This document shows, piece by piece, positions 11,903 through 51,400 of a stretch of 64,000 bases of DNA. Position numbers and translations under genes: made by a program. Positions within the stretch are counted from its first letter, which is position 1. Every line of letters starts with the position of its first letter. The stretch is taken from the NCBI GenBank assembly GCA_002269645.1, contig NIVC01001822.1, forward strand, positions 62,178-126,177, in the 5' to 3' direction. Origin of the DNA: Macrostomum lignano (taxonomy: Eukaryota). Under the pieces are notes generated by a model that was not told the DNA's origin, searched no databases, and saw only the letters and a list, made by a program, of their open reading frames with translations.

Positions 11903-14900
11903 TCAACGCGCGCCAGGGAAGGCTTTTTGAAAACGCTCCTTGTACTCGAATGACACCTGTTTGAAGGCGCACACCACCGGATCGTCGGGATCAGCGGCCA
12001 GCTGAGCCAGCAAAGTGGACACAGCCCTGCAGGCCAGCAGGAAGTCTTTAAGCAGGTCGAACAAATCGCCAACTCGAATACCATTGTCGCGAACAATCGA
12101 AGCCAGACTGCAGTGAGTGAAAAAGTCCAAAGCGTAGGCGTTTAACAGTCGTTTGGTAGGCAACAGCGGAATCAAATTCGCATCGGTGACGATCTCCAAT
12201 GGCAGCAGGCGACGCAACTGTTCCGAGCTGTTGTTACCGCCGTTCAATAGCACGCGACCGAGTGCTTTGTTCGAGTCCGGAGTAGTGGGACCCCAGGACA
12301 GCCGGGCCAGGGGGGCCACCGCTGACACTTGGAGTTGGCTATTGCTGCTAGGCACAATGGGAGCGGACCGGCTGAACGGCAGAGCGGTGGAGAATTTCAA
12401 CAGGCCAGACTTGGCAATGCAGCGCAGGTAATTGGTGTAAGTCACAGCTGTGGCAGCGTTGTAGTCACGGACTGCCGATCTGATGTCGGTTGGCAGCGGC
12501 TTCAGAAGCACCTTGGAGTTCTCGGTTGGCCTGGAAATCAGAGAGGGAGAGATTACAATGTACGCAGGCACGCACTGCGGCCCTGAGGAATGTACACTAA
12601 CTAAAATAAGTAATAAGGCGCCTCAGCCATTGAACAGGCTCTTACGCCACTAGGAATGAATTAGGATCCAAGTTGGGAGTGTACTAATGTACACTAGGTT
12701 TCTAAGCTAGGCTAAGAGAAACTGTGGCCATCAAGCCGAGCAGGCGACACCAGTCGGGCTGAGGGCGGGCCCTACCCCCTACCGTCGCTCAAATCACTCC
12801 AAGCTCAAATCAAAACCTCCCCGGGGCTAGAGGGTTTGAGTGGACCAATCAGAGAAGCCCGTGCCTTCTCCGGGTTGGTAAGCCAATAAAATTGGTCATT
12901 TGACCAATGCCCCCACGGCCGTGGCGACCCGAAGGAACCTCCCCACCCACTAAACCCCGGGTACTCTTTGCCAGACGGTCTCTTATCTCTGAAGCGGCAG
13001 GAGGGCTATTCGCCGGGACTATTTCACCCTTTGCTTCGCCAACCCGCCATTTTTATAAGGCCGTGCTAACGGCCCCGTCCTGCTCAGACTCAGTCCTGGT
13101 TTTGGCACACTCCAGCTTTAATAGAATCTCTGGTCTGTTCACCAGAGGACACTCCGAGGGAGACCGTCAGAGCATCAACTGGAACAGGTATAGGCCTGCC
13201 TTCCTATACAGCTACCCACAGCCCTTCCTGATCGACTATTACCCTCCAACCCAGCCTACTAACTCATTACAAGCTTTCGGCCAGGCAGAGACAAGTGTCA
13301 CAGGGGTACTGCGGTTAGGCGTTTCTATGCGAGACAAAACCATACCCCTGAGGAATGTACACTCTGTGTCTTAACTGCTCTATATTTGTAGAGAAACTCC
13401 CTGTCTATCCCCGTCGCAAACATTTTCCAAGCATGAACTACTACTAGTAGGGTAAAAGCATATCAGCAAAGATAAACGTATTTTGTCAGAGGTTTACCAA
13501 TCGGCATCAATGATTCTAGCGGAAAAACGGCAGGTATTTTATTACCTTAAATAATGCAGAGCTCCATCAGCCGTCCTTTTAACCAGAGACCGGGCCAGCT
13601 CCATCTTAGTGAACAGGTGGCACAGGATTCGAACCAATTTTCTCAACGTCTCATCGGAGAATTGCACTCGCAACGGCGGCAATTGACGCTCAAAATCGGC
13701 GGCCGTGTGCTGCTGCCGGCCCCGGCTGTGATTGGGTCGGCCGGAGTAGCAGTTGGAGCACAGGCTGTAGTCAGACCAGCACTTGGTGCACTTGAATCGC
13801 TGACCAACTATCGGTTCGCCAGTCTGACAGCCCTCGCAATAGAATCCGTAGTGAATTGGCGGCAGCTGTTTGCTAGCCGGCTCGCACAGCTGGCGCAGAG
13901 CGGGAGATCGAAGCAGATAGGTGAGCACGAAGTTGCCAGGCTGCTGGTAGCCCATGTGGCATACTAAGCCGGCCAGGTCCTGAAGAATGGCCGAGAGCGA
14001 GTCACGTGAGTTGCAGAGAATCGTAAAACAAGGAGTCGCAAAAAAGTCGTTGTTAAAGCTTAACTTTCTACTAACACAAGTAGACTAAATGTACACAGTT
14101 GTTAGTTTCAAAGTCGCGGGTAATAAAACGCCTCAAATTGACTCTCGTCGTTTTATAGTCGTCTAGAGAGTCACTTCTTTCACTATTTTACCTGTGTTAC
14201 CTGCAACGACTGTGAAAGGACTCTTAGACTAAATGGCATCCAGCTTGGGAAAAACACACGGTGCCAAATTGTTACTCAATGAGACTCACCAGAGGAGCGC
14301 CCAACTCATTAATAAGATCCTGCCTGTGCAGAAACTCCGCACTGAACAGGAAGAACAATCGCAATTGCTGCATCATATCCGGCTTCTGGTGCGCAGCAAA
14401 CGGGTGCTCCAAAACCGTAGCAGCTTTAGCGTGGGCCACCTCCGGATCAGTGGCATTCCCAGTCAGAAGCAACAGTCTGAGAACGAAAGCGCAGGTGAGC
14501 GGAAAGCCGCCCTTGAGTTCGGGCAGGTCGGCTTGGATCAGGTGAGCAATCTTAGAGGCGGGCACGCCGTAGAACACAATGTTGCCGATGTTGTCGAAGC
14601 CACGCCGGCCGGACCGACCGGCCATCTGGTGATAGTTGAGCGCGTCCAGAAACTTGTCATCGCCAGCGAATACGACAGTTTTGCAGGGCATGTGAACGCC
14701 CAGAGCCAGGGTGGCAGTTGCTGTGACCACCTGCACGGGGCGCGAGAGAGATTCCAAAGTAAAACACTATGGGATTTTATAGTGGGAAGAGGGGATAAAG
14801 CCAAGAATTCTACATGTACATGACTAAATTCCTACATGCAAATTATTTTGGGAATCGGTATTGTTAGCGCTCATTTTCGCGCCACAGGCGCACATTTTTG

Positions 14901-17900
14901 CACCGCAGGCACTCATTTTACTATCACAGGCACTCGTTTTGGCGCCGCAGACAGGCGCTCATTTTGGCGCCAAAGACACTCATATTGGCGCCGCAGGCAC
15001 TCATTTTAGCGCCGCAGGCACTCATTTTAGCGCCGCAGGCACTCATTTTAGCGCCGCAGGCACTCATTTTAACGCCGCAGGCACTCATTTTAACGCCGCA
15101 GGCACTCATTTTAACGCCGCAGGCACTCATTTTAGCGCCGCAGGCACTCATTTTAGCACCGCAAGCACTCACTTTAGCGCCGCAAGCACTCACTTTAGCG
15201 CCGCAAGCACTCACTTTAACGCCGCAAGCACTCACTTTAGCGCCGCAAGCACTCACTTTAACGCCGCAGGCACTCACATTATCGCCGCATGCACTCATTT
15301 TAGCGCCGCAGGCACTCATTTTAGCGCCGCAGGCAAGCGCCGCAAGCACTCACTTTAACGCCGCAGGCACTCATTTTAGCGCCGCAGGCAAGCGCCGCAA
15401 GCACTCACTTTAACGCCGCAGGCACTCATTTTAGCGCCGCAGGCAAGCGCCGCAAGCACTCACTTTAACGCCGCAGGCACTCATTTTAGCGCCGCAGGCA
15501 AGCGCCGCAAGCACTCACTTTAACGCCGCAGGCACTCATTTTAGCGCCGCAGGCAAGCGCCGCAAGCACTCACTTTAACGCCGCAGGCACTCATTTTAGC
15601 GCCGCAGGCAAGCGCCGCAAGCACTCACTTTAACGCCGCAGGCACTCATTTTAGCGCCGCAGGCAAGCGCCGCAAGCACTCACTTTAACGCCGCAGGCAC
15701 TCATTTTAGCGCCGCAGGCAAGCGCCGCAAGCACTCACTTTAACGCCGCAGGCACTCACATTATCGCCGCATGCACTCATTTTAGCGCCGCAGGCACTCA
15801 TTTTAGCGCCGCAGGCAAGCGCCGCAAGCACTCACTTTAACGCCGCAGGCACTCATTTTAGCGCCGCAGGCAAGCGCCGCAAGCACTCACTTTAACGCCG
15901 CAGGCACTCATTTTAGCGCCGCAGGCAAGCGCCGCAAGCACTCACTTTAACGCCGCAGGCACTCATTTTAGCGCCGCAGGCAAGCGCCGCAAGCACTCAC
16001 TTTAACGCCGCAGGCACTCATTTTAGCGCCGCAGGCAAGCGCCGCAAGCACTCACTTTAACGCCGCAGGCACTCATTTTAGCGCCGCAGGCAAGCGCCGC
16101 AAGCACTCACTTTAACGCCGCAGGCACTCATTTTAGCGCCGCAGGCAAGCGCCGCAAGCACTCACTTTAACGCCGCAGGCACTCATTTTAGCGCCGCAGG
16201 CAAGCGCCGCAAGCACTCACTTTAACGCCGCAGGCACTCATTTTAGCGCCGCAGGCAAGCGCCGCAAGCACTCACTTTAACGCCGCAGGCACTCATTTTA
16301 GCGCCGCAGGCAAGCGCCGCAAGCACTCACTTTAACGCCGCAGGCACTCATTTTAGCGCCGCAGGCAAGCGCCGCAAGCACTCACTTTAACGCCGCAGGC
16401 ACTCATTTTAGCGCCGCAGGCAAGCGCCGCAAGCACTCACTTTAACGCCGCAGGCACTCATTTTAGCGCCGCAGGCAAGCGCCGCAAGCACTCACTTTAA
16501 CGCCGCAGGCACTATATTTCAGCGACCTGATGCAAAATGATTGATTTCCATAACGGCTTACAAGGTGGGGTGAGGGGAACAAAGCAGCTACTCAGAGCCA
16601 TGGCCCAAGCTGAACAACAGAAGCAAACAACCCAAACTAACCTGCAAATGACCGCTACGGAACAGCATCTCAACAGCTTGTCGGTGCTTCGAAGAACAAC
16701 CGGCATGATGATAGCAGACGCCCAATTCCAGCATATGCTTCACATCTTCATCAAGCAGCTTCTCCAGCACTTTGTTGAGAAAAGATTCTTGCACAGCCTG
16801 CGGTTTAAAATAAGCGCAGGCCTGAATTTTGCTGCGCAGTTCCAGCCGATCTCTGTAGTAGGACTCCAATTCGATCTCGGCTGGATTCTCATCGTCCGAA
16901 TCCTCTTTGTCGCGATTGCGCTTGGCGGCGATGGCCATCGCTTCGCGAGCTTTCTCCATGCGCTCTAGCAGATTAGGATTAACGGCTTGCTTAATCCGAT
17001 CATTGGCTCGATCGACAAGCGACGCGGCAAGGTTTTCAATGCCTTTACGATCGTTCATAAACACCAAAGCTGGCAAGCGACCCTCGGAACGCAGCCGATC
17101 GATTAGATCGGGAAATTTTTCAATAAGATCAACGTCGGATAGGAACTCAAACTGTTGAGTCACATTCTGCTGCTCCTCAATTGACTGAATTGTAGTTAGC
17201 AGCTGGGTAGACTTGGCATGTGGACTCTGGCGAAGCAGCTCAGACACAGTCGATTTCAGGCCAACTTCCAGTTCCCGAAATTGCGTTCTGCGTTTTTTTT
17301 AAATTGAAGCGGTGGGTGGGAAATGTTTCACAATTTTAGGGCCAAAACCTTACAGGTGCAACACGAGGTCATTATAAAATATCGGAAGCACCTTAAAAAA
17401 TATTAGTTCTTTTTTTTCTTCTGAGATTTAATTTGAGAGAATGAGAGTTTAAATCGCTATTTTGGCTATTGTCATGGAAAATATCCAATCGCCTCGTGTT
17501 GCTCAAGTATGCTTTTGTCTTTTCGGCATCAAGTCCGATATAGTCTTACTCAGGGGTTGGCTGGCAAACTTTTTACCTCAAGGGCCAGACAGGAGAGAGG
17601 ATAGAAGGGAGAGAAGGGAGAGAAGGGAGAAGAAAGCTAAGAAGAGACGCAAACCTTGAGCGGGCCGGATAGAAAGGCTTGGCGGGCCGGGGTTTGCTGA
17701 CCCCTGCTTTAACTGGTAGGCTAAAGACATTAAAAAATGATTGGTCATTAATTAATTACCTAGTAATTGGCTCGGTGCCAAAAAACGATTGCGGTTTAAA
17801 TTTCTGCAGAGCCTTAGCTGCAGCTGGATCGTCCGTGAAGCACTGCAAAGCGGCTGACCAAACCTCGGTAGATTCCTTCGGTGACAGCTTTAAATTCCTT

Positions 17901-20900
17901 GGGAATCCGTTGATTCGCAATAGTTTGTCGCTAAGAAAAGCGCACGGATTAACTTCAGCAATAAATTCACTCTTAGGCAGATAAACGGAAGTGCGAATGT
18001 CTGAATAGCGCTCAGAGTAGGTTACCAGATTCACTTTGTAACCTTCTACAGCAGCAGGAGCGGCACCTTTCTGTCGCTGTTGCTTCTTAGGCTGCATCGG
18101 CTGAGATTGCTTCAGAAGAGTCGAGTCTTGAACCTGCACAAACTGCTTGATGGTCTGCAGCCAGTCGTGAAAATAGTCTTTGTTAGAGATAGTTGCCGAC
18201 AGGGCAAGAAACGGACACCGGATTAGGCAGAGCAGATATTCCCAGACAACGCCCCCGATCCCGGTGCCAATGCAGTGAACTTCGTCAAAGATCACATAGC
18301 GAATACGGCTAGCCCAGCCTTGACGCCTGGGACTCAGCAACAGCAGTTCAAGGCACTGCGGCACTGTCACCAAAATCTGACAGCTAGTGGCTTTGTGATT
18401 ATAGTCTCGAGTGAATACTCCGCATAGCTCCATGCCGGGAGTCAGGTTTGGCTTAGAAAACCTGGCACTAATGGAAGCCTGAACCTGATTTACTAAAGCT
18501 TTGGTTGGCGCTACGTAAACAGCGACAGCCTCGTCGCTCATCTCCAGAACCTTTTTCATGCAGTAGTAAGAGCAGAATGTTTTTCCAGACGATGTTGGAG
18601 CAACAATAACGGCAGACTCGCGCCTGTCAACCACATCTAGCAGTTCTCTCTGCCAGGTGTCGGGAATGAATCCCTTCACCCTGGGATCTGGATCGAATCG
18701 AACATTTCTCTGCATCAGGTGGCCCATGTGCTGCATTTGAAAGTCGCGATAATTCAGTGGACAGATGCATTCTTTTTCAACTTGCACATGTTTTAAGCGC
18801 TCCGCGTCTACACTAGAGACAGCGGCAGCCTCTTTGAATCCAACCATGATAAATAATTCGGCAATCTTGACGCGCAATTCAGAACTAATCATGCTAACCA
18901 ACGGCTCAGTTGTGTACTTGTGCAGGGTCCGCACTAGATCTGCCAAGGCGCTGAAAGACTTACCGCTGCCTCCACTACTAGCACAGCTGGTCTTCCACAG
19001 CTTGTACTGCTCTCGCATTACGAAAAGTACCGGCTCCTCGAAAATTCGATCCTGCACTGTGCAGGACTCCGCCATACGCGTGGCCTCAGCGATAGCCTGA
19101 GCCGGTTCCAATTTTTTAACGCCCGGCAACAGATTTTTCCACTGCTCCTTTAGCTTCTTCGTATCTTTGTCGGCTTTGGCGCGCAAATTCTCTTCTTTGA
19201 TGGCGTCAGCCTTAGAAACTGGCTTTGACTTGCCTTTTGGCTGCTTCTGATGCTTCTGCTTTTGCTGGTTAGCAGATTTCGGCTTCTCGTTAGCACCGGC
19301 AGATGCAGCGGACGCGCCGTCAGAACCGGTTGACAGTACGATAGTCTCACTAGTCTCCCCATGCAGCGACTCGCCGTACATGCTGATGTAATTCTTGTAC
19401 TTCTGAATACTCTTCAGCTGTCTCTGCCTTAGAATAGGATTAGAAGACAGCTCAGGCTCGCCTTGCTCTTCTAAATCGTCGCGAAGCTCCCGATTAACGT
19501 GCCAATGACAGCGCTCGTCGAATAGCATCGCCGAGTTCTGTCCAGGCTCGTTAGTTAACGATATGCAACCAGACGAGCCGAGTTTGTCAAGAATTTCGCC
19601 GGCAAATTCTTTCAACAGACGATTGTCGATACGCTGAAGCGGCGCCATTTCAGCCGCCTGCTCAATGAAAGGCTCCTGTGGGAGCGCCTGCTCAGAGATT
19701 GACAGCGACAATAGAGGCGAGGCATCCGATTGATCGGCACTGTTCAGCTTTTGCAGCTCGGTACAAATTTTAGAGGCGTAGCTTTTGTATCTGAAAGAAA
19801 TCGAATGCCGTTATAAAAAAAATTGAAATTAACGTAGCATCACTAAAAATCAGAATTAACAGATACGAGCTATTTACCGTCCTGTTGTTTTTATAGTCAC
19901 GATTAAAACATAGTCATTGTTCAAAATGTCTATGGTAATTTACGTTAAGGCAACGACATTCAAGCAATTCACCGGGATATCATTTTAGAAAACGAACTAG
20001 TCTATGAGCGTAAGATAAAATAGTCTATGGTTGTAAGTGGGGGCTTCACTCCCACACCCCCGCTATCGCCGCTCGTGTCTATGGCCATTACCATGTTTTC
20101 TCGCTTCCAGACAACCCCCATTGCCTAGCTATCTCAGCATAGGGCCATCCAATCTCAACCAACCGCCACTTGTTAGCTGGTTTTTTCGAGACACGTGTCT
20201 ATGGAGTATGGTTGGACCATAGCTGAATTTGCTGGTCCCTAGGCTGACATAGCGTGGCTACAGAGGTCAGTTCTGTCAGTCCCTAGGCTGACATAGTTTG
20301 CCGAAAGCTGTCGTAGAAATATGCAGCGATTGCTGGATAAATAAAAAAATCTATCAACTTAATACTCCGTGTCCGTGACCTCGTCCTCTCTTTGTGCTGG
20401 TCACAATAAGTTAAAAACTCAGCCGGGAAGCCTAAGAAACCGTTTTAATATTGGCCGTACACTATCGTCCGACTTACTCGGAACAATTTGTGTCCTTGAT
20501 TGAGCAAGACACTTAACTCTGCATTGCTTCAGTTCACCCAGCTGTAAAATGGGTGCCAGCATTAGCTGGGGTAATTGAGGCTGTATGGCGACCCCCCCCC
20601 CAGTCCTTGGACTGAACGGCCGTACGCAGCCTTCAGATGCGACTGGGCAGGAAACACACCTGCCCATTTAGGCAGGTGTACTAAAAAATGACAAAAAACT
20701 GTAGCATAATTCAACGGAAAACTGAAGCCTGAACTTACTTAGCCAAAATTTCACGCGCTCGCGGATGCCAACCGGGCAGTTGGTTAATCCAGGCTTGACC
20801 AAATCGACGATAGACAAAAATGTCGATAAGATCGGCGACAGACTCTGGATCGGCGAACTCGTTGAGACCCTTCATTGGCAGCAGTTCGAGCCGCAGGTGC

Positions 20901-22148
20901 TTGGCCAATTCATGCAAAGAAGAGAGCAAATTTTGCTCCTCTACCTTGTCGCCTGCAGCAGCGGCTTGGTTGGCGCTTTTAGTAGCAGCAACAAGCTGAA
21001 GCCGGTCGTCCAGCGTCATGGTGGACATGCAGGCAAAATACAGGCACCAACGGCTCACTTTTTCAATAACTTCGTCGTTGCTTTCGATGTTAGTATCTTT
21101 AACTAGAGCTCGGAGAGCAACTCTAACAGCGAGGTGGTCTTTCAGGCGGCTGCCTGGTTCTGAACAGAAACAAAAATCATACAGTTATTAGCTTAGCAGT
21201 TTAAATAAACAAGCTTATAAACACTTAATCCATACATGCGCAACTGCTGGCCGACCTAGTAAACATACCCACCCAAAAACATACAGGCGTAGTACTAATT
21301 AGATGACGAGACATTTAGCCTTAGTAAGACACTCATAGTGACTCTTGCCGTTTACCCAACATTTCGTTAATTTTTTCTTTAGGGTTTCTTTCACAGGTAA
21401 GTCGCATTTTTGGTCAAAAAGTAAGTCGCATGGCCAGTGTAAATCAGAGGGTTGCACATGTATGACTTAATCAACTAATAAAGAGATTTAAAAACATACC
21501 AATTAACTCGGCCTCAGTCTTTAAAGCTTCAACATGATCATCAGTTTCAGGGACCATTGCCGATCGATCTGTACATGATAGCTTTTGAAATAGTCTGCCA
21601 TACAGTGGCATCCACTGCACATAGGATGCTTGCAGCTTCATGTCATTCTGCTGCAGGCTGCTAACATAAGCAACTGGCACCCTGCGAGCCAGGCTAGACA
21701 AAGCCAAATTCACATGCCGCTGTTCAGCGGATTCGCCATAGCCAACACCGTCGTGAAGCATAAAGAACAGAGGCTTCTCCTCCTTCAAATAGTGAAGCCA
21801 GGCTGGGTCGAAGCAAGACTTGGCCAAGTCGGTGTGCACAGGCACTGAACAGTTGACGGCAAGGTGTAACTGCATAGCGCGCCTAAACAGATCCATCAGT
21901 GGATCATTGCGAAAACCATTAAAGTAAACAACTTGACAGTCACCGCCGTGATCTTTGAGCAGTTTCAGAATGGATTCGGCCAGATAGAACAAATGCAACT
22001 GCTGGCCATATTGCCACCCCACTGTGGCCGCAGCCTCCATCAGTAAAGAGTCGCCATCAAACACGTAGAATTCGCCATCAACCCGATCTTGGAAAAGTGG
22101 CATCAGTTTGGCAGAGAGCGCCACACTAGCCAATGGCGATATGCGCAT
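11903..22148 (-). CDS. DDX60: DDX60-like Ski2-family DExD/H RNA helicase, 1749 aa, 7 exons, with an inserted ZZ zinc finger
   Basis: complement(join(11903..12530,13546..13979,14290..14730,16642..17287,17760..19790,20739..21159,21500..22148)) = 5250 nt; all junctions GT-AG and phase-consistent. Motifs: N-terminal FDGDSLL, PDTWQRELLD, APTSSGKT, IFDEVH, LALSAT, YHHAG, VVTATATLALGVHMPCKTVVF, QMAGRSGRRG, and the DDX60-type tail LNAYALDFF...DDPVVCAF. Confidence 0.92.
12581..13363. mobile_element. 747-bp LTR-like insert flanked by an 18-bp direct repeat, in the last DDX60 intron
   Basis: ccctgaggaatgtacact at 12581-12598 and 13346-13363. The interior is GC-rich with three CCAAT boxes (~12845-12907) and a TATA-like tttataa (~13052). 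Family not identified. Confidence 0.6.
14870..16512. repeat. 21-bp minisatellite evolving into a 55-bp higher-order repeat (DDX60 intron)
   Basis: Monomer ttttagcgccgcaggcactca; from ~15310 a regular 21+13+21 unit. Confidence 0.96.
17551..17706. mobile_element. hAT/Charlie-like MITE remnant with a GA-rich core
   Basis: Ends caggggt..tggcaaac and gtttgctgacccctg, with subterminal gcgggccgg motifs. No clear TSD. Related decayed reverse copies (tctggccyttgagrtaaaa next to CT-rich tracts) at about 23240-23560 and 27460-27600. Confidence 0.55.
20489..20560 (+). mobile_element. CORE-SINE (MIR-core-like) fragment in a DDX60 intron
   Basis: tgtgtccttgattgagcaagacacttaactct...cttcagttcacccagctgtaaaatggg resembles the MIR CORE consensus tgtgaccttgggcaagtcacttaacctct...ctcagtttcctcatctgtaaaatggg (recalled from memory, not searched). 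Confidence 0.5.
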
Positions 22149-39450: not shown

Positions 39451-42400
39451 ATGGAGGCTGGCTCCGGTTCGGGCTGCGGCAGCCGGCGCAACCTGATGAA
39501 TCTCACCATAGCAACCACGCCAAGCGGCGCCGATTTGAATTCGCTAGAGCTTCGTCTGCATCAGCAGCAGCTGCAGGCGAAACAACAGCAGCAGGAGCAG
39601 CAGCAGCGGGGCCATCAGGACCTCGACGAGAGTCAACGCAAGCGTTTGGCAGAATTTGTTCAACGCAAGCGCAGCATAGGCGAATTGCGTCACGAAGACT
39701 TTGACGATATCGCCGAATTGGGCGCCGGATCCTCTGGCGTTGTTCAACGGGTGCTGCACAGGCCCACTAGACAGGCTATGGCTAGGAAGCTTATTCATTT
39801 GGAAATCAAGCCGTCTGTTAGGGCCCAGATTATCAGAGAGTTGGAGGTTCGTGTTCCTCTAGTAGTTGAATTTGTACTTTTATGGAATTTACACTTCTAG
39901 TTTCAGTCTGGGGATGCTACGACGTTAATCTGGGATTTGGGATTTTTAATTAGGATCTGGGAATATGGTATTCGAATTTGTGGGATTTGGGGTTTGTTAT
40001 TGAGATCTGAGAATATGGTTTTCAAATTTGTGACATTTGGGATATCTTATTGGAATCTGGGAATATGGTTTTCAAATTTGTGAGATTTGGTGGATTTCTT
40101 ATTGGGATCTGGGAATATGGTGTTCGAATTTGTGGAATTTGGTGGATTTCTTATTGGGATCTGGGAGTATGGGGTTCGAATTTGTGGGATTTGGTGGATT
40201 TCTTATTGGGATCTGGGAGTATGGTGTTCGAATTTGTGGGATTTGGTGGATTTCTTATTGGGATCTGGGAATATGGTTTTCAAATTTGTGAGATTTGGTG
40301 GATTTCTTATTGGGATCTGGGAGTATGGTGTTCGAATTTGTGGGATTTGGTGGATTTCTTATTGGGATCTGGAAAAGTGGTATTCAAATTTGTGGGATTT
40401 GGGATTTCTTATTGGGATCGAATTTGTTGTGTTTAGGATTTCAACTTAACTAGAGGTAATTGGTTATGGTATTCAAATTCGGGTTTTCGGGAAAATTAGT
40501 GGTTCTTAAAAAAATCACTGCCTAATTGGGTTGAGTTTAATAAAGTTCAATAAGCACTTTTCCAATTCCTCAGGTGCTGCACTCGTGCAACAGTCCCTAC
40601 ATCATCGGCTACTTCGGCGCCTATTTTGTGGACTCCTCCGCCACCATCTGCATCTGCATGGAGTACATGAACGCTGGATCGCTAGATCTGGTGCTCACTA
40701 AAGCTGGCCGACTGCCCGAACCGATTGTGGCCAAGATTAGCTGTTCCGTGCTCAAGGGGCTCATCTATCTGAGGGAGAATATTAACTGTCTGCATAGGTG
40801 AGGCGGTGTGTGCTTTTAATATTTGTTATAAATGATGACAAGAAACTGGTGGTGTAAGTAGCGGAAGCAGATATCAGGATATCAAAGGTAGGTCATTATA
40901 GATATGAGAAGAGACAGTGGTAGATGTGAGAATAGACAGTTGTAGATATGAGAAGAAACAGTGGTAGATATGAGAAGAGAAAGTGGTAGATATGAGAAGA
41001 AACAGTGGTAGATATGAGAAGAGAAAGTGGTAGATATGAGAAGAGACAGTGGTAGATATGAGAATCGACAGTGGTAGATATTAGAATCGACAGTGGTAGA
41101 TATGAGAAAAGACAGTGGTAGATATGAGAAGAGAAAGTGGTAGATATGAGAAGAGACAGTGTGAGTATCGCTTAAGCTTATTAGGTATGTAGATGTTAAG
41201 AGATAAGAGACGAGAGAGGCACTGGGGATATAGTGAAGAGTTACATTGCCACTGCACTGTCTCTGGTTGCATAGGCAAGTTACGACGGTTGTCAATTAGT
41301 CTTTGCTAGGATCCGGATGCTTTGATGGGGGGGGGGTACGAACAGGATGACAGCGCCCGAGATAAGATTATTATTACGATAAGATATTATTACAAAGGAT
41401 GGAAAATGCTCTCATTGAGGCAGTTAGAATTTTTTGTGGTCACAAAAACTCATTGGATATCTCTATTGTGCGTGTAGCCTTTGAGATTTGAATTCAACAG
41501 TAAAAGTTCCAGACGTCTAGCTGCTTATTCTTGAGGTTGCCATGACAACAATCGGCTTAGCAACTTAGGCTTTCACCTACTTGCAACTCTTAGAGATGCA
41601 AAATAGACTGTGTCATGAAATCTGCGCACGCCTTTCTGCTCTGCTTCTGCGATTTCTATAGCCCATAGTGCTTATACAATACAAGCATTTGACGCTTTGA
41701 AAACCAGTCCGACATGACTGCTACTACATGTAACTGCTAGCTCTATAGGGCTCTTTGAGGAATCCTTTCCGGCCAAGTAAATAAAGTTCATCGATGCTCT
41801 CTTTTAATGCTAGAAGTATGGGCAACCCAGGTTTTTATATTCAATTTGCATCAATAGTCAATCTAAATTGGCACCACTAGTCAGCATCATTAGCGTCACA
41901 ATTCAGCATCATCATTAGCGTCACAATTCAGCATCATCATTAGCGTCACAATTCAGCATCATCATTAGCGTCACAATTCAGCATCATCATTAGCGTCACA
42001 ATTCAGCATCATCATTAGCGTCACAATTCAGCATCATCATTAGCGTCACAATTCAGCATCATCATTAGCGTCACAATTCAGCATCATCATTAGCGTCACA
42101 ATTCAGCATCATCATTAGCGTCACAATTCAGCATCATCATTAGCGTCACAATTCAGCATCATCATTAGCGTCACAATTCAGCATCATCATTAGCGTCACA
42201 ATTCAGCATCATCATTAGCGTCACAATTCAGCATCATCATTAGCGTCACAATTCAGCATCATCATTAGCGTCACAATTCAGCATCATCATTAGCGTCACA
42301 ATTCAGCATCATCATTAGCGTCACAATTCAGCATCATCATTAGCGTCACAATTCAGCATCATCATTAGCGTCACAATTCAGCATCATCATTAGCGTCACA

Positions 42401-45400
42401 ATTCAGCATCATCATTAGCGTCACAATTCAGCATCATCATTAGCGTCACAATTCAGCATCATCATTAGCGTCACAATTCAGCATCATCATTAGCGTCATA
42501 ATTGAGAATCATCATTAGCGTCACAATTCAGCATCATCATTAGCGTCATAATTGAGAATCATCATTAGCGTCACAATTCAGCATCATCATTAGCGTCACA
42601 ATTCAGCATCATCATTAGCGTCACAATTCAGCATCATCATTAGCGTCACAATTCAGCATCATTAGCGTCACAATTCAGCATCATCATTAGCGTCACAATT
42701 CAGCATCATCATTAGCGTCAAAATTCAGCATCATCATTAGCGTCACAATTCAGCATCATCATTAGCGTCAAAATTGAGCATCATCATTAGCGTCACAATT
42801 CAGCATCATCATTAGCGTCAAAATTGAGCATCATCATTAGCGTCAAAATTCAGCATCATCATTAGCGTCACAATTCAGCATCATCATTAGCGTCATAATT
42901 GAGAATCATCATTAGCGTCACAATTCAGCATCATCATTAGCGTCATAATTGAGAATCATCATTAGCGTCACAATTCAGCATCATCATTAGCGTCACAATT
43001 CAGCATCATCATTAGCGTCAAAATTCAGCATCATCATTAGCGTCACAATTAAGAATCATCATTAGTGTCATAATTGAGAATCATCATTAGCGTCACAATT
43101 AAGAATCATCATTAGTGTCATAATTGAGAATCATCATTAGCGTCACAATTCAGCATCATCATTAGCGTCACAATTCAGCATCATCATTAGCGTCACAATT
43201 CAGCATCATCATTAGCGTCACAATTCAGCATCATCATTAGCGTCACAATTCAGCATCATCATTAGCGTCACAATTCAGCATCATCATTAGCGTCACAATT
43301 CAGCATCATCATTAGCGTCACAATTCAGCATCATCATTAGCGTCACAATTCAGCATCATTAGCGTCACAATTCAGCATCATCATTAGCGTCACAATTCAG
43401 CATCATCATTAGCGTCAAAATTCAGCATCATCATTAGCGTCACAATTCAGCATCATCATTAGCGTCAAAATTCAGCATCATCATTAGCGTCACAATTCAG
43501 CATCATCATTAGCGTCAAAATTGAGCATCATCATTAGCGTCACAATTCAGCATCATCATTAGCGTCACAATTCAGCATCATTAGCGTCACAATTCAGCAT
43601 CATCATTAGCGTCACAATTCAGCATCATCATTAGCGTCACAATTCAGCATCATCATTAGCGTCACAATTCAGCATCATCATTAGCGTCACAATTCAGCAT
43701 CATCATTAGCGTCACAATTCAGCATCATCATTAGCGTCACAATTCAGCATCATCATTAGCGTCATAATTGAGAATCATCATTAGCGTCACAATTCAGCAT
43801 CATCATTAGCGTCATAATTGGGAATCATCATTAGCGTCACAATTCAGCATCATCATTAGCGTCACAATTCAGCATCATCATTAGCGTCAAAATTCAGCAT
43901 CATCATTAGCGTCACAATTCAGCATCATCATTAGCGTCACAATTCAGCATCATCATTAGCGTCACAATTAAGAATCATCATTAGTGTCATAATTGAGAAT
44001 CATCATTAGCGTCACAATTCAGCATCATCATTAGCGTCACAATTCAGCATCATCATTAGCGTCACAATTCAGCATCATCATTAGCGTCACAATTCAGCAT
44101 CATCATTAGCGTCACAATTCAGCATCATCATTAGCGTCACAATTCAGCATCATCATTAGCGTCACAATTCAGCATCATCATTAGCGTCACAACTGACATC
44201 ATTAGCGTCACAACTGACGACATCATTAGCGACACAATTGACGACATTATTAGCGACACAATTGGCGACATTATTAGCGACACAATTGACGACATTATTA
44301 GCGACACAATTGACGACATTATTAGCGACACAATTGACGACATTATTAGCGACACAATTGACGACATCATTAGCGACACAATTGACAAAATTATTAGCGA
44401 CACAATTGACGACATCATTAGCAACACAATTGACAAAATTATTAGCGACACAATTGACGACATCATTAGCGACACAATTGACGACATTATTAGCGACACA
44501 ATTGACGACATTATTAGCGACACAATTGACGACATCATTAGCGACACAATTGACAAAATTATTAGCGACACAATTGACGACATCATTAGCAACACAATTG
44601 ACAAAATTATTAGCGACACAATTGACGACATCATTAGCGACACAATTGACGACATCATTAGTGACACAATTGACGACATTATTAGAGACACAATTGACGA
44701 CATTATTAGCGACACAATTGACGACATTATTAGCGACACAATTGACGACATTATTAGCGACACAATTGACAAAATTATTAGCGACACAATTGACGACATC
44801 ATTAGCGACACAATTGACAAAATTATTAGCGACACAATTGACGACATCATTAGCGACACAATTGACGACTTCATTAGTGACACAATTGACGACATCATTA
44901 GCGACACAATTGACGATATCATTAGCGACACAATTGACATCATTAGCGACACAAGTCTACAGCATTCCTAATTGGCGTCAGACAGACCTATATGTATATT
45001 AGAGGCAATACAAGATGTCCCTCATAATGGATGCTTCATTCAGGTCTAATCAATATATCCATCATGAATATTTCTAGAGACGTGAAGCCCTCCAACATCC
45101 TGGTTAGTCTGGAAGGCGACTGCAAACTGTGCGATTTTGGCGTCTCCGGCCAGCTAATCGACAGTCTGGCCAACAGTTTCGTTGGCACCCGGTCCTATAT
45201 GGCGCCGGAACGACTCAATGGCGAAGAGTACTCAATATTGTCTGACGTTTGGTCTATAGGCCTAAGCCTGGTCGAGCTGGCCACTGGTCGCTATCCCATT
45301 CCGCAGCCGGATAGCCGGGACTACACCAGCGCTTTCAGCAGCGACCGCCAAAGAAATCTGGCCGAGCATAGGGAGGCCGCTGTTAAGGGCACGCGGCTGA

Positions 45401-48400
45401 GAGGTGAGCGAGAGTATCATCCTGAAATCACATTTAGTATCATCCTGACATCACATTTAGTATCAGCCTGAAATCACATTTAGTATCATACTGACATCAC
45501 ATTTAGTATCATCCTGACATGGCATTTAGTATCATCCTGACATCACATTTAGTATCATCCTGACATCACATTTAGTATCATCCTGACATCACATTTAGTA
45601 GCATACTGACATCACATTTCTTAGCATACTGACATCACATTTCTTAGCATACTGACATCACATTTATTAGCATACTGACATCACATTTAGTATCATCCTG
45701 AAATCACATTTAGTATCATCCTGAAATCACATTTAGTATCATCCTGACATCGCATTTAGTATCATCCTGACATCACATTTCTTAGCATACTGACATCACA
45801 TTTAGTAGCATACTGACATCACATTTAGTATCATCCTGAAATCACATTTAGTATCATCCTGAAATCACATTTAGTATCATCCTGACATCGCATTTAGTAT
45901 CATCCTGACATCACATTTCTTAGCATACTGACATCACATTTATTAGCATACTGACATCACATTTAGTATCATCCTGAAATCACATTTAGTATCATCCTGA
46001 AATCACATTTAGTATCATCCTGACATCACATTTAGTATCATCCTGAAATCACATTTAGTATCATCCTGACATCACATTTAGTATCATCCTGAAATCACAT
46101 TTAGTATCATCCTGACATCACATTTAGTAGCATACTGACATCACATTTAGTATCATCCTGAAATCACATTTAGTATCATCCTGACATCGCATTTAGTATC
46201 ATCCTGACATCACATTTCTTAGCATACTGACATCACATTTATTAGCATACTGACATCACATTTAGTATCATCCTGAAATCACATTTAGTATCATCCTGAC
46301 ATCGCATTTAGTATCATCCTGACATCGCATTTAGTATCATTCTGACATCGCATTTAGTATCATCCTGACATGGCATTTAGTATCATCCTGACATCGCATT
46401 TAGTATCATCCTGACATGGCATTTAGTATCATCCTGACATGGCATTTAGTATCATTCTGACATCGCATTTAGTATCATCCTGAAATCACATTTAGTATCA
46501 TCCTGACATGGCATTTAGTATCATCCTGACATCACATTTAGTAGCATACTGACATCACATTTCTTAGCATACTGACATCACATTTAGTAGCATACTGACA
46601 TCACATTTAGTAGCATACTGACATCGCATTTAGTATCATCCTGAAATCACATTTAGTATCATCCTGACATCGCATTTAGTATCATCCTGACATCACATTT
46701 CTTAGCATACTGACATCACATTTAGTAGCATACTGACATCACATTTAGTATCATCCTGAAATCACATTTAGTATCATCCTGACATCGCATTTAGTATCAT
46801 CCTGACATGGCATTTAGTATCATTCTGACATCGCATTTAGTATCATCCTGAAATCACATTTAGTATCATCCTGACATCGCATTTAGTATCATCCTGAAAT
46901 CACACATTTAGTATCATCCTGACATCGCATTTAGTATCATCCTGACATGGCATTTAGTATCATCCTGACATCACATTTAGTAGCATACTGACATCACATT
47001 TAGTAGCATACTGACATCACATTTATTAGCATACTGACATCACATTTAGTATCATCCTGACATCGCATTTAGTATCATCCTGACATCACATTTAGTAGCA
47101 TACTGACATCACATTTAGTATCATTCTGACATCGCATTTAGTATCATCCTGAAATCACATTTAGTATCATCCTGACATCACATTTAGTAGCATACTGACA
47201 TCACATTTCTTAGCATACTGACATCACATTTAGTATCATCCTGAAATCACATTTCTTAGCATACTAACATCACATTTATTAGCATACTGACATCACATTT
47301 CTTAGCATAATGACATCACATTTAGTATCGATCATCCTGACATCACATTTAGTAGCATACTGACCACATTTCTTACCATACTGACATCACATTTAGTAGC
47401 ATACTGACATCACATTTAGTAGCATACTGACATCGCATTTAGTATCATCCTGACATCACATTTAGTATCATCCTGAAATCGCATTTAGTATCATTCTGAC
47501 ATCACATTTGGTATGATCCTGACATCACATTTAGTATCATACTGACATCACATTTAGTATAATTCTGACATCATATTTAGTATCATACTGACATCGCATT
47601 TAGTATAATTCTGACTGACATCGCATTTAGTATCATCCTGACATCACATTTAGTATCATCCTGAAATCACATTTAGTATCATTCTGACATCACATTTGGT
47701 ATGATCCTGACATCACATTTAGTATCATTCTGACATCACATTTGGTATGATCCTGACATCACATTTAGTATCATACTGACATCACATTTAGTATCATCCT
47801 GACATCACATTTAGTATCATCCTGAAATCACATTTAGTATCATCCTGACATCGCATTTAGTATAATCCTGACATCGCATTTAGTATCATCCTGAAATCAC
47901 ATTTAGTATCATTCTGACATCACATTTGGTATGATCCTGACATCACATTTAGTATCATACTGACATCACATTTAGTATCATCCTGACATCACATTTAGTA
48001 TCATCCTGAAATCACATTTAGTATCATTCTGACATCGCATTTAGTATAATCCTGACATCGCATTTAGTATAATCCTGACATGGCATTTAAAATGATTTAA
48101 AATCAATCTCTTCATTTTAATGACATAGATTTTGCTTGTTAATTAATGCGTCCCGTCACTCTTCATGATCTCAGGACATTGCAAAGAGAATCGATATGCA
48201 ATATTTGTCTGTAGAATTGCCCCTCGAAAAACTCAATCATCCCAGCCTTGTTCGGCACCCGCTGTCGGTTTGGTGTTCAAAATAAAAGTGCGTTCAATAT
48301 GCTCTGTCCGTCTCTCTCGTCATCTTGTGATCATCTTGGCCAGTTCCCATGCTACTCGGCGATTTCTTTTTCGCTTAATCCCCGTTTTACAAAGCTCCAC

Positions 48401-51400
48401 TTCTGCACGCCACTCAGGGCACTGAAAGGACTGGGTAGAAAGCAAGATAAAAATCAGAACTAATCCAGGAAGATGAAAAAGCGCAACGTTGCGAATGTGT
48501 ATGCATTTCTTAGAAATTTAGACTGACATTTTTATGCATAATTTTAAACTGTCTGAAACTTATAATTTATGTGCGAATCTGACATTTTAAAAGCTGTTTT
48601 CATCATCCTTTGACATTGGTTAGTGAGAATCGCCCCTAAAAAGCAGTGAGAATCGCCCCTAAAAAGCAGTGAGAATCACCCCTAAAAAGCAGTGAGAATC
48701 GCCCCAAGAAAACATTGAGAATCGCTCAAAAAGCAGTGAGAATCGCCCCATAAACATTGAGAATCGCTCAAAAAGCAGTGAGAATCGCCCCATAAACATT
48801 GAGAATCGCCCCAGAAATCATTGAGAATCGCCCCAAAAATCATTAAGAATCGCCCAAAAACATTGAGAATCGCCCCAAGAAATCATTGAGAATCGCCCCA
48901 AGAAATCATCGAGAATCGCCCAAAAACATTGAAAATCGTTCCAAGAAATCATTGAGAATCGCCCAAAAACATTGAGAATCGCCCCAAGAAATCATTGAGA
49001 ATCGCCCCAAGAAATCATTGAGAATCGCCCCAAGAAATCATTGAGAATCGCCCCAAAAATCATTAAGAATCGCCCAATAAACATTGAGAATCGCCCCAAA
49101 AACATTGAAATCGCCCCAAGAAATCATTGAGAATCGCCCCAAAAACATCGAGAATCGCCCCAAAAACATTGAGAATCGCCCCAAGAAATCATTGAGAATC
49201 GCCCAAAAACATTGAGAATCGCCCCAAGAAATCATTGAGAATCGCCCCAAGAAATCATTGAGAATCGCCCCAAGAAATCATTGAGAATCGCCCCAAAAAT
49301 CATTAAGAATCGCCCCAAAAATCATTAAGAATCGCCCAATAAACATTGAGAATCGCCCCAAAAACATCGAGAATCGCCTCAAAAACATTGAAAATCGCCC
49401 CAAGAAATCATCGATAATCGCCCCAAAAAATCATCGATAATCGCCCCAAAAACATTGAAAATCGCCCCAAGAAATCATCGATAATCGCCCCAAAAACATT
49501 GAGAATCGCCCCAAGAAATCATTGAGAATCGCCCCAAAAATCATTAAGAATCGCCCAATAAACATTGAGAATCGCCCCAAAAATCATCGAGAATCGCCCA
49601 AGAAATCATCGATAATCGCCCCAAGAAATCATCGATAATCGCCCAAAAACATTGAGAATCGCCCCAAAAACATTGAGAATCGCCCAAGAAATCATTGAGA
49701 ATCGCCCCAAGAAATCATTGAGAATCGCCCCAAAAATCATTGAGAATCGCCCAAGAAATCATCGAGAATCGCCCCAAAAACATTGAAATCGTTCCAAGAA
49801 ATCATTGAGAATCGCCCCAAAAATCATTAAGAATCGCCCAATAAACATTGAGAATCGCCCCAAAAACATTGAAATCGCCCAAGAAATCATTGAGAATCGC
49901 CCCAAAAACATTGAGAATCGCCCCTACAAGCAGTATCATAATACTGTATATCAATACTAAGAATCGCCCCAAAAACATTGAGAATCGCCCCTACAAGCAG
50001 TATCGTAATACTGTATATCAATACTAAGAATCGCCTTAAAAACATTGAGAATCGCCCCTACAAGCAGTATCGTAATACTGTATATCAATACTAAGAATCG
50101 CCCCAAAAACATTGAGAATCGCCCCTACAAGCAGTATCGTAATACTGTATATCAATACTAAGAATCGCCCCAAAAACATTGAGAATCGCCCCTACAAGCA
50201 GTATCGTAATACTGTATATCAATACTAAGAATCGCCCCAAAAACATTGAGAATCGCCCCTACAAGCAGTATCGTAATACTGTATATCAATACTAAGAATC
50301 GCCCCAAAAACATTGAGAATCGCCCCCTACAAGCAGTATCGTAATACTGTATATCAATACTAAGAATCGCCCCAAAAACATTGAGAATCGCCCCTACAAG
50401 CAGTATCGTAATACTGTATATCAATACTAAGAATCGCCCCAAAAACATTGAGAATCGCCCCTACAAGCAGTATCGTAATACTGTATATCAATACTAAGAA
50501 TCGCCCCAAAAACATTGAGAATCGCCCCTACAAGCAGTATCGTAATACTGTATATCAATACTAAGAATCGCCCCAAAAACATTGAGAATCGCCCCTACAA
50601 GCAGTATCGTAATACTGTATATCAATACTAAGAATCGCCCCAAAAACATTGAGAATCGCCCCTACAAGCAGTATCGTAATACTGTATATCAATACTAAGA
50701 ATCGCCCCAAAAACATTGAGAATCGCCCCTACAAGCAGTATCATAATACTGTATATCAATACTAAGAATCGCCCCAAAAACATTGAGAATCGCCCCTACA
50801 AGCAGTATCATAATACTGTATATCAATACTAAGAATCGCCCCAAAAACATTGAGAATCGCCCCTACAAGCAGTATCATAATACTGTATATCAATACTAAG
50901 AATCGCCCCAAAAACATTGAGAATCGCCCCTACAAGCAGTATCGTAATACTGTATATCAATACTAAGAATCGCCCCAAAAACATTGAGAATCGCCCCTAC
51001 AAGCAGTATCATAATACTGTATATCAATACTAAGAATCGCCCCAAAAACATTGAGAATCGCCCCTACAAGCAGTATCGTAATACTGTATATCAATACTAA
51101 GAATCGCCCCAAAAACATTGAGAATCGCCCCTACAAGCAGTATCGTAATACTGTATATCAATACTAAGAATCGCCCCAAAAACATTGAGAATCGCCCCTA
51201 CAAGCAGTATCGTAATACTGTATATCAATACTAAGAATCGCCCCCCTCGCTACCGCAGGCATGGAGCCGCCCCAGAACGGGCCGAAGCAGATGGCCATAT
51301 TCGAGCTGCTATCCTACATTGTCTATCAGCAGCCGCCGAAGCTGCCCAGCTTTGCTTTCAGTGAAAATATCTGCGACTTTGTGGATTGTTGTCTGCGCAA

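Follow-up and report, generated by a model that had tools for sequence, protein, structure and literature searches.

A ZZ-type zinc finger insertion in a DDX60-family helicase gene of Macrostomum

A DDX60-family helicase gene with a 70-residue insert

We analysed 64,000 nt of the Macrostomum lignano assembly GCA_002269645.1 (contig NIVC01001822.1, positions 62,178 to 126,177 of the forward strand; this whole stretch is referred to as the window), the minus strand of which carries at 22148..11903 a gene for a DDX60-family (Ski2-like) helicase with 7 exons and 1749 codons plus stop. Exon 6 of this gene holds a 70-amino-acid (aa) insert with a ZZ-type zinc finger, which an earlier reading of the sequence, the original prediction, had singled out. 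The helicase family is known; what we describe is a lineage-restricted, once-gained ZZ insertion in one of its members and not a new kind of system. That the module is a ZZ-type zinc finger with a single evolutionary gain is in our judgement highly probable, and the best overall explanation, to which we give a probability of about 0.55, is that this Macrostomum DDX60-family helicase carries a once-gained ZZ docking module in a surface linker. The features of the gene, in the order of its reading, are:

Exon 1, 21500..22148, minus strand: aa 1-216, with PIN-like_DDX60 at aa 12-189 (22115..21582)
Exon 2, 20739..21159, minus strand: aa 217-356
Exon 3, 17760..19790, minus strand: aa 357-1033, with DEAD/RecA1 at aa 737-894 (18652..18179)
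Exon 4, 16642..17287, minus strand: aa 1034-1249, with the start of Helicase_C at aa 1216 (16743)
Exon 5, 14290..14730, minus strand: aa 1250-1396, with the remainder of RecA2 (QMAGRSGRRG at 1284) and the first part of the C-terminal region
Exon 6, 13546..13979, minus strand: aa 1397-1540, with the N-flank …LRQLCEP, the ZZ insert and the C-flank VQFSDETLRKLVRILCHLF… in a single frame
Insert, 13668..13877, minus strand, in the middle of exon 6: 70 aa (aa 1431-1500), in which the Pro-rich arms KQLPPI … RQLPPL flank the ZZ core
ZZ core, 13692..13853, minus strand: aa 1439-1492, 54 codons (HYGFY…AADF)
Exon 7, 11903..12530, minus strand: aa 1541-1749 plus stop, with the C-terminal helical bundle

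Six of the minus-strand open segments between 22289 and 11906 have DDX60-type domains or align with DDX60 proteins. Joining the open segments at canonical sites yields the 7-exon model, in which all six introns are GT-AG and which reproduces the 1749-aa protein of the original prediction; tblastn with Stylophora, Gavialis and JGI DDX60 proteins matches the same exons. In the whole protein Pfam places PIN-like_DDX60 (PF23002) at aa 12-189 (92.1 bits versus a cutoff of 27), the DEAD domain at aa 737-894 (80 bits) and Helicase_C at aa 1216-1293 (37.7 bits), and the motifs of superfamily 2 (SF2) helicases are intact (APTSSGKT at 754, DEVH at 859, SAT at 888 and QMAGRSGRRG at 1284). The best matches, aligned over the full length, are proteins named DDX60 from Branchiostoma, Ptychodera, insects, reptiles, sharks and corals.

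The structural comparisons point the same way. An AlphaFold2 (AF2) model of aa 700-1749, built on a 47-row alignment, has a predicted local distance difference test score (pLDDT) of 82 and a predicted template modelling score (pTM) of 0.81. When this model was compared with the PDB by Foldseek, kDDX60 (7ase_f) came first (E 2.9e-27), followed by Ski2 and then by MTR4 (6c90_A), with E values for the 7ase_f, Ski2 and Mtr4 matches spanning 1e-27 to 1e-20, and a profile of the DDX60 family likewise has kDDX60 as its best PDB match (E 2.4e-246). The host core superposes with a TMt of 0.66 on the 734-residue two-segment MTR4 chain 6c90_A, which we take to be an arch-deleted construct, as against 0.43-0.46 for full-length Mtr4 chains. 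The host is therefore a true member of the DDX60-type Ski2-like helicases, and nothing in it points to an arch of the Mtr4/Ski2 type.

The ZZ module and its distribution among DDX60 relatives

Translation of 13542-14000 on the minus strand reads …LRQLCEP-ASKQLPPIHYGFYCEGCQTGEPIVGQRFKCTKCWSDYSLCSNCYSGRPNHSRGRQQHTAADFERQLPPLR-VQFSDETLRKLVRILCHLF… in a stop-free single frame, and the same open frame also reads …DLAGLVCHMGYQQPGNFVLTYLLRSPALRQLCEP ASKQLPPIHYGFYCEGCQTGEPIVGQRFKCTKCWSDYSLCSNCYSGRPNHSRGRQQHTAADFERQLPPLR VQFSDETLRKLVRILCHLFTKMELARS…. Both flanks and the ZZ lie within one exon (13979..13546) and one frame, so that the finger is an in-frame part of the helicase, as had been proposed, and the interval 13692-13853 assigned to it at the outset corresponds to exactly 54 codons. 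The core provides eight Zn ligands arranged as three C-x2-C pairs and two His (C1444, C1447, C1460, C1463, C1470, C1473, H1480 and H1487). Pfam ZZ (PF00569) matches aa 1438-1476 with 25.9 bits in the full protein and 30.4 bits (E 3.4e-07) in the exon open reading frame, above the gathering score of 21.4, and a sequence comparison of the insert with the PDB returns ZZ domains only (HERC2 at 2.5e-07, PRT1 at 8e-07, MIB1 at 1.4e-06, p62 at 9e-06 and KCMF1 at 9e-05), which bears out the original assignment to the ZZ type.

In three respects the module calls for comment. First, its invariant His spacing, H-x6-H, is outside the HxH, HxxH and HxxxH classes into which solved ZZ domains fall (PMC12370974); an Asp/Glu four residues past the second His is also conserved in the ZZ-bearing DDX60 proteins, and the second zinc may be bound by H1480 and H1487 or by H1487 and D1491. 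Second, the AF2 prediction is confident for the host fold on both sides of the insert and does not resolve the insert itself, with pLDDT values of 51-56 at model residues 731-800 (aa 1430-1499) and of 90 and 82-95 in the neighbouring blocks. Third, the core is bracketed by the similar peptides KQLPPI (aa 1433-1438, 13859-13876, minus strand) and RQLPPL (aa 1495-1500, 13673-13690, minus strand). We considered the QLPPI/QLPPL repeat as a target-site duplication and rejected this, since only 10 of the 18 bases match and a ZZ-bearing relative (P0122, described below) is without the peptides, which are probably linker arms and not a duplication scar.

The site of the insert is framed in DDX60 proteins by conserved flanks, …F(H)KLC.P and FS.EVM…L..LF. 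A linker of ~10 residues or fewer is all that parts them in the DDX60 of Gavialis, Elephas, Xenopus, Stylophora and Porites, in agreement with the earlier statement that they are nearly adjacent in vertebrates. To survey the site we searched aa 1250-1749 against 1.84 billion representative proteins and obtained 1777 matches. Among the best 150 of these only two align unbroken across the insert, and the remainder either break in two at the insertion point (query position ~180-185) or stop before it. Flank spacing could be measured in 153 of 282 fetched proteins, namely those where both flanks were placeable: 147 of the 153 deviate from the ZZ-less length by 10 residues at most, three have 16, 17 and 29 additional residues at the site (the one with 29 has no Cys), and three, P0121, P0122 and P0265, have exactly 69 more. 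A phmmer search with the insert, combined with a regular expression for the ligand pattern, matched only P0121 and P0122 among 264 proteins.

Relatives free of the ZZ include those of Branchiostoma, Ptychodera, orthopteran and phasmid insects, reptiles, amphibians, cartilaginous fishes, corals, Hydra and rotifers, as well as of the fungus Mortierella and the amoebozoan Phalansterium; other flatworms and most Spiralia are not represented among the fetched relatives. Within this sample, the insert is absent from all other relatives from vertebrates to amoebozoa, which supports the proposal of a domain acquisition and not of an ancestral feature, and the finger is not a common possession of invertebrate orthologues. 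The insert is rare among DDX60 proteins and not unique to the window gene. In a word-indexed protein collection, neither the ZZ exon alone nor a 3-sequence ZZ alignment found a match; full-length DDX60 is apparently absent from this collection, all 120 of the DDX60 matches listed there being shorter than 1200 aa. One locus (L004) came up when JGI metagenome contigs were scanned with an alignment of the ZZ region, and it is without the ZZ. As a separate observation, a Lytechinus pictus protein named DDX60 (P0118) combines a Death domain (PF00531) with PIN-like_DDX60, and the DDX60 genes of other invertebrate lineages may perhaps have acquired other signalling modules.

The closest ZZ-bearing relative, P0121 (UniRef100_A0A1I8FWF1), is a Macrostomum lignano protein deposited under an automatic name only; over 1255 residues its identity to the window protein is 88.6%. 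M. lignano is described as a hidden tetraploid in PMC5704211, and the window gene and P0121 could be homeologues in this species or belong to close congeners. P0122 and its 90% cluster mate P0265 come from marine assemblies and are 34% identical to the window protein; their sources are contig k119_695526 of ENA ERZ27293408, scaffold_4967 of the TARA Oceans metagenome TARA_SAMEA4397500 and contig ERR6349624_19792 of the Logan assembly of ERR6349624. The contigs measure ~6 kb, have a GC content of 44% and carry a single gene. The ZZ scores 22.6 bits in P0121, above the Pfam threshold, and 15.1 bits in P0122, below it.

Site and length of the insert are the same in the window protein, P0121 and P0122. 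All eight Zn ligands are invariant across these three sequences, as are a Y, the strings R-(F/Y)-K-C and L-C-x-x-C-Y, and a trailing F. Insert identity is 86% between the window and M. lignano proteins (88.6% for the whole protein) and 29% between Macrostomum and P0122. In a neighbour-joining (NJ) tree of 86 full-length sequences over 1292 columns, computed with a simple distance correction and without the ZZ columns, the three ZZ-bearing proteins grouped together in 100 of 100 bootstraps. Since the trio forms a clade even when the ZZ columns are left out, the insert was in all likelihood acquired a single time, in their common ancestor, and the zinc scaffold has been retained under purifying selection since that gain.

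The marine contigs themselves showed a further peculiarity. The TARA/ENA contig and the Logan contig are 99.8% identical from ~290 onward, and their 5′ ends (L001 1-286 and L003 1-292) are unrelated, with the Logan version encoding 26 extra N-terminal residues. The difference has the look of a 5′ exon that has been spliced on in one, transcript-like contig, as compared with genomic DNA in the other. The remaining ~5 kb of the marine gene is intronless.

How might the module have entered the gene? In Branchiostoma (L006, 37979/38562) a phase-1 intron lies exactly in the linker, …VPKD|DSSNEFSDE…, and the same holds for Ptychodera (L005, 48692/52800; …NRRN|EAYSDEE…); L004, a 2-kb metagenome contig, also has a phase-1 intron in the linker (~1220-1350; …LCERTS|GKITEEVM…). 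Symmetric exon insertion followed by intron loss would leave just such an in-frame module at the position of a phase-1 intron of other animals. In this scenario a ZZ-coding exon would have entered the phase-1 intron that occupies the linker elsewhere, and the introns flanking it would have been lost later. We give even odds to the gain of the ZZ by exon insertion at an old phase-1 intron position. A recent insertion or a foreign origin was considered and rejected on two grounds: the insert resembles its flanks in composition (GC 0.59 versus 0.55, and GC at third codon positions, GC3, 0.70 versus 0.66), and it is common to a relative of 34% identity.

Possible functions of the module and rival explanations

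In the explanation that we favour, a ~55-aa ZZ-type double-zinc module is carried on two short Pro-rich arms in the linker between the post-RecA2 region and the C-terminal helical bundle, where it would serve as a zinc-stabilised, solvent-exposed docking knob that adds a protein-contact (adaptor) surface to the helicase. Docking would not proceed via the acidic pocket that p62, HERC2 and PRT1 use for free N-termini. The case for a folded and maintained module rests on the retention of the ligands at 34% host identity, the equal length of the insert and its rate of change, which is not faster than that of the host (86% versus 88.6%). Protein docking in particular is favoured by the Pro-rich arms, by the position in a surface linker on an arch-less core and by the precedent of the Orb2 ZZ. 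It is the best-supported function for the module, and we advance it tentatively, as something short of an even bet.

The same features bear on the possibility that the ZZ is a neutral structural module, which folds and binds zinc without having a ligand and persists because a folded domain can rarely be removed cleanly from a loop. Loop length does vary elsewhere, as the three relatives with 16, 17 and 29 additional residues illustrate, and the non-ligand surface residues diverge widely between Macrostomum and P0122, with 29% identity in the insert. Set against this are the identical length of 69 additional residues, the conservation of eight ligands and scaffold residues at 34% host identity and the fact that, between the window and M. 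lignano proteins, the insert has changed no faster than the rest (86% versus 88.6%). On balance we hold a neutral module to be unlikely, although it is the rival that survives best.

Could the finger instead read N-degrons or other N-termini, in the manner of p62, HERC2, PRT1 or KCMF1, and so couple the helicase to ubiquitin, proteasome or autophagy partners or substrates? In HERC2 the pocket consists of D2709, D2728 and D2730, and with either D2709A or D2730A the domain no longer binds histone H3 or an Arg N-degron mimic (PMC9001736). In PRT1, D312 and D336 hold the alpha-NH3+ of the ligand, and the legend to Figure 4 of PMC12370974 refers to ‘two conserved Asp’ common to p62. We counted the equivalent positions along the HERC2 and PRT1 alignments, which together with these papers form the basis of the pocket comparison:

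HERC2 D2709 / PRT1 D312 equivalent: E1445 in the window protein, V in M. lignano, T in P0122
HERC2 D2728 equivalent: D1466 in the window protein, D in M. lignano, E in P0122
HERC2 D2730 / PRT1 D336 equivalent: S1468 in the window protein, S in M. lignano, C in P0122

The acidic pocket is thus only partly kept (E1445, D1466 and S1468 versus D2709, D2728 and D2730), as was noted from the outset, and the Asp pair for the alpha-NH3+ is found in none of the three ZZ-bearing DDX60 proteins, its positions being taken by E/V/T and S/S/C. These positions differ among the three, even within the 89%-identical pair, and are therefore not constrained, which makes canonical N-terminus reading by the DDX60 ZZ unlikely as judged from the sequences, all the more so given that loss of either Asp ends binding of both HERC2 ligands. 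In favour of such reading, the equivalent of D2728 is acidic in all three proteins (D/D/E), the window copy has a Glu at the D2709 equivalent, and the solved ZZ domains nearest to it in sequence are those of HERC2, PRT1, MIB1, p62 and KCMF1, several of which bind free N-termini. Taken together, we consider an N-terminus reader, even a modified one, improbable, and the link to proteolysis or autophagy partners that the original prediction drew from the ZZ is not supported. More generally, N-degron recognition should not be deduced from a ZZ before its Asp pair has been checked.

A more speculative alternative is that the DDX60 ZZ represents an undescribed functional class of ZZ (H-x6-H, no Asp pair, one acidic residue) that would bind one particular partner, or a protein terminus bearing a modification, and would do so on a ribosome- or 43S-associated helicase. 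This we regard as a long shot. Were it true, an RNA-surveillance helicase would in one invertebrate lineage be directly and physically tied to a pathway of protein recognition, and the case would also be a datable one of exon insertion at a conserved phase-1 intron.

Still less probable is an accessory nucleic-acid-binding finger that would help the helicase to hold or choose its RNA substrate. A zinc finger on an RNA helicase invites the thought, and kDDX60 acts on the RNA-rich 43S pre-initiation complex (7ase), but the net charge of the ZZ core is only ~+2 in the window protein and P0122, and none of the PDB-matched ZZ domains is described there as nucleic-acid binding.

Finally, the notion that the insert is an artefact, be it a chimera of the assembly or of the gene model or a segment spliced out of the mRNA, is very improbable: the exact 1749-aa model is indeed not in the protein collection, but flanks and ZZ run uninterrupted in one frame and one exon with GC and GC3 like the flanks, the in-frame GT…AG pairs have poor donors and no polypyrimidine tracts and would delete conserved flank residues, and the same architecture recurs independently in the M. 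lignano protein of UniProt and in three contigs from separate assemblies (two ENA, one Logan). The idea of a cryptic intron spanning the ZZ was accordingly rejected on the quality of its splice signals; exon 6 appears to contain no credible internal splice sites, and the removal of this segment from transcripts, which had been named at the outset as a possible objection, is improbable on these grounds.

Several observations nevertheless weigh against a once-gained, zinc-stabilised docking module acquired at an intron. The ZZ of P0122 scores under the Pfam threshold (15.1 bits versus 21.4). With a pLDDT of 51-56 in context and of 38 when modelled in isolation from a 4-row alignment, the ZZ has a fold that is putative, and given the H-x6-H spacing its second zinc site may be built differently. 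NJ with a simple correction can be misled by long branches. Hydra DDX60 (L007) has no intron at the linker site, and the intron-site evidence comes from deuterostomes and one metagenome contig. The acidic residues at the D2728 and D2709 equivalents and the N-terminus binding of several of the nearest solved ZZ domains, both given above, belong on the same side.

What, then, would a once-gained docking module mean? DDX60 is a large and poorly understood helicase whose role in vertebrates is disputed (interferon-pathway cofactor versus inhibitor of internal ribosome entry site, IRES, translation). An added interaction module would mark the surface loop as a side of the helicase that is accessible and can be put to functional use, and the ZZ-bearing lineage offers a handle for finding what the DDX60 family touches. 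The case is also compact and checkable as an instance of a domain probably gained where an intron position is conserved.

The remainder of the window contains ordinary host-gene exons that show no obvious connection with the helicase: a SET-domain exon truncated where the window begins (2-643, plus strand), a protein-kinase exon with a MAP2K-like DFGVSGQL… motif (45028-45468, plus strand; Pkinase, 92 bits) and the SRP receptor beta subunit (55467-56126, plus strand; SRPRB, 126 bits). A partial DDE_3 match of 35 bits (Tc1/mariner-type transposase) at 3036-3611 on the minus strand is apparently a transposable-element fragment. Minisatellite arrays are exceptionally dense in the window, with periods of 20-70 bp and up to ~125 copies (for example at 5129-6263, 6935-7936, 8252-9647, 14870-16513, 41885-44954, 45413-48089 and 48624-51244), and the 1.6-kb array at 14870-16513 lies within intron 4 of the DDX60 gene. 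So extreme a minisatellite load presumably fits the genus Macrostomum.

Comparison with known systems

In the literature that we searched, nothing connects DDX60 with a ZZ finger, or with Macrostomum, flatworms or planarians. Vertebrate and other metazoan DDX60/DDX60L share with the window protein the order PIN-like_DDX60, DEAD, Helicase_C and C-terminal helical region, with 32-42% identity over the full length, and they conserve the flanks LC.P and FS.E…L..LF. They differ in having a short linker (within ~10 residues of the ZZ-less length) where the window protein has its 70-aa ZZ insert. The original prediction spoke of a DDX60 antiviral helicase. Membership in the DDX60 family stands, whereas ‘antiviral’ is a carry-over from vertebrates: interferon induction and antiviral roles are vertebrate observations which cannot be assumed for a flatworm and which are themselves disputed, as interferon induction was reported not to require DDX60 in the mouse (PMC4833184) and human DDX60 was reported to lower type II IRES translation (PMC9724679).

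The family is older than animals, with further members in fungi, amoebozoa and kinetoplastids. Its only solved member, kDDX60 of Trypanosoma cruzi (7ase/7ask, on the 43S pre-initiation complex), is the best structural and profile match to the host; unlike the window protein it is 2174 aa long and has lineage-specific additions of its own, and it is not matched in the PDB search with the ZZ segment.

On the side of the insert, the best sequence matches are HERC2 (6ww3/6ww4), PRT1 (8zg8-8zgb), p62/SQSTM1 (6miu, 5yp7) and KCMF1, at E values of 2.5e-07 to 1e-04. The N-terminus-reading ZZ domains share with it the series C-x2-C … C-x2-C … C-x2-C … H … H and the R-F-K-C strand, and differ in having the Asp pair and in a His spacing of HxH, HxxH or HxxxH in place of H-x6-H.

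In terms of role, the arch/KOW of Mtr4 and the arch of Ski2 are extra modules on a Ski2-like core too, and in those proteins they dock adaptors. They are built as a coiled stalk with a beta-barrel and not as a small zinc module, so that the analogy is one of role only and not of membership. The ZZ of Drosophila Orb2, described in PMC12774597 as interacting with translational co-repressors, resembles the insert, as do those of CPEB2-4, in being a ZZ-type module on an RNA-binding protein, with the difference that the Orb2/CPEB2-4 ZZ is C-terminal and accompanies RRMs, whereas that of the window protein is set in a loop of a helicase.

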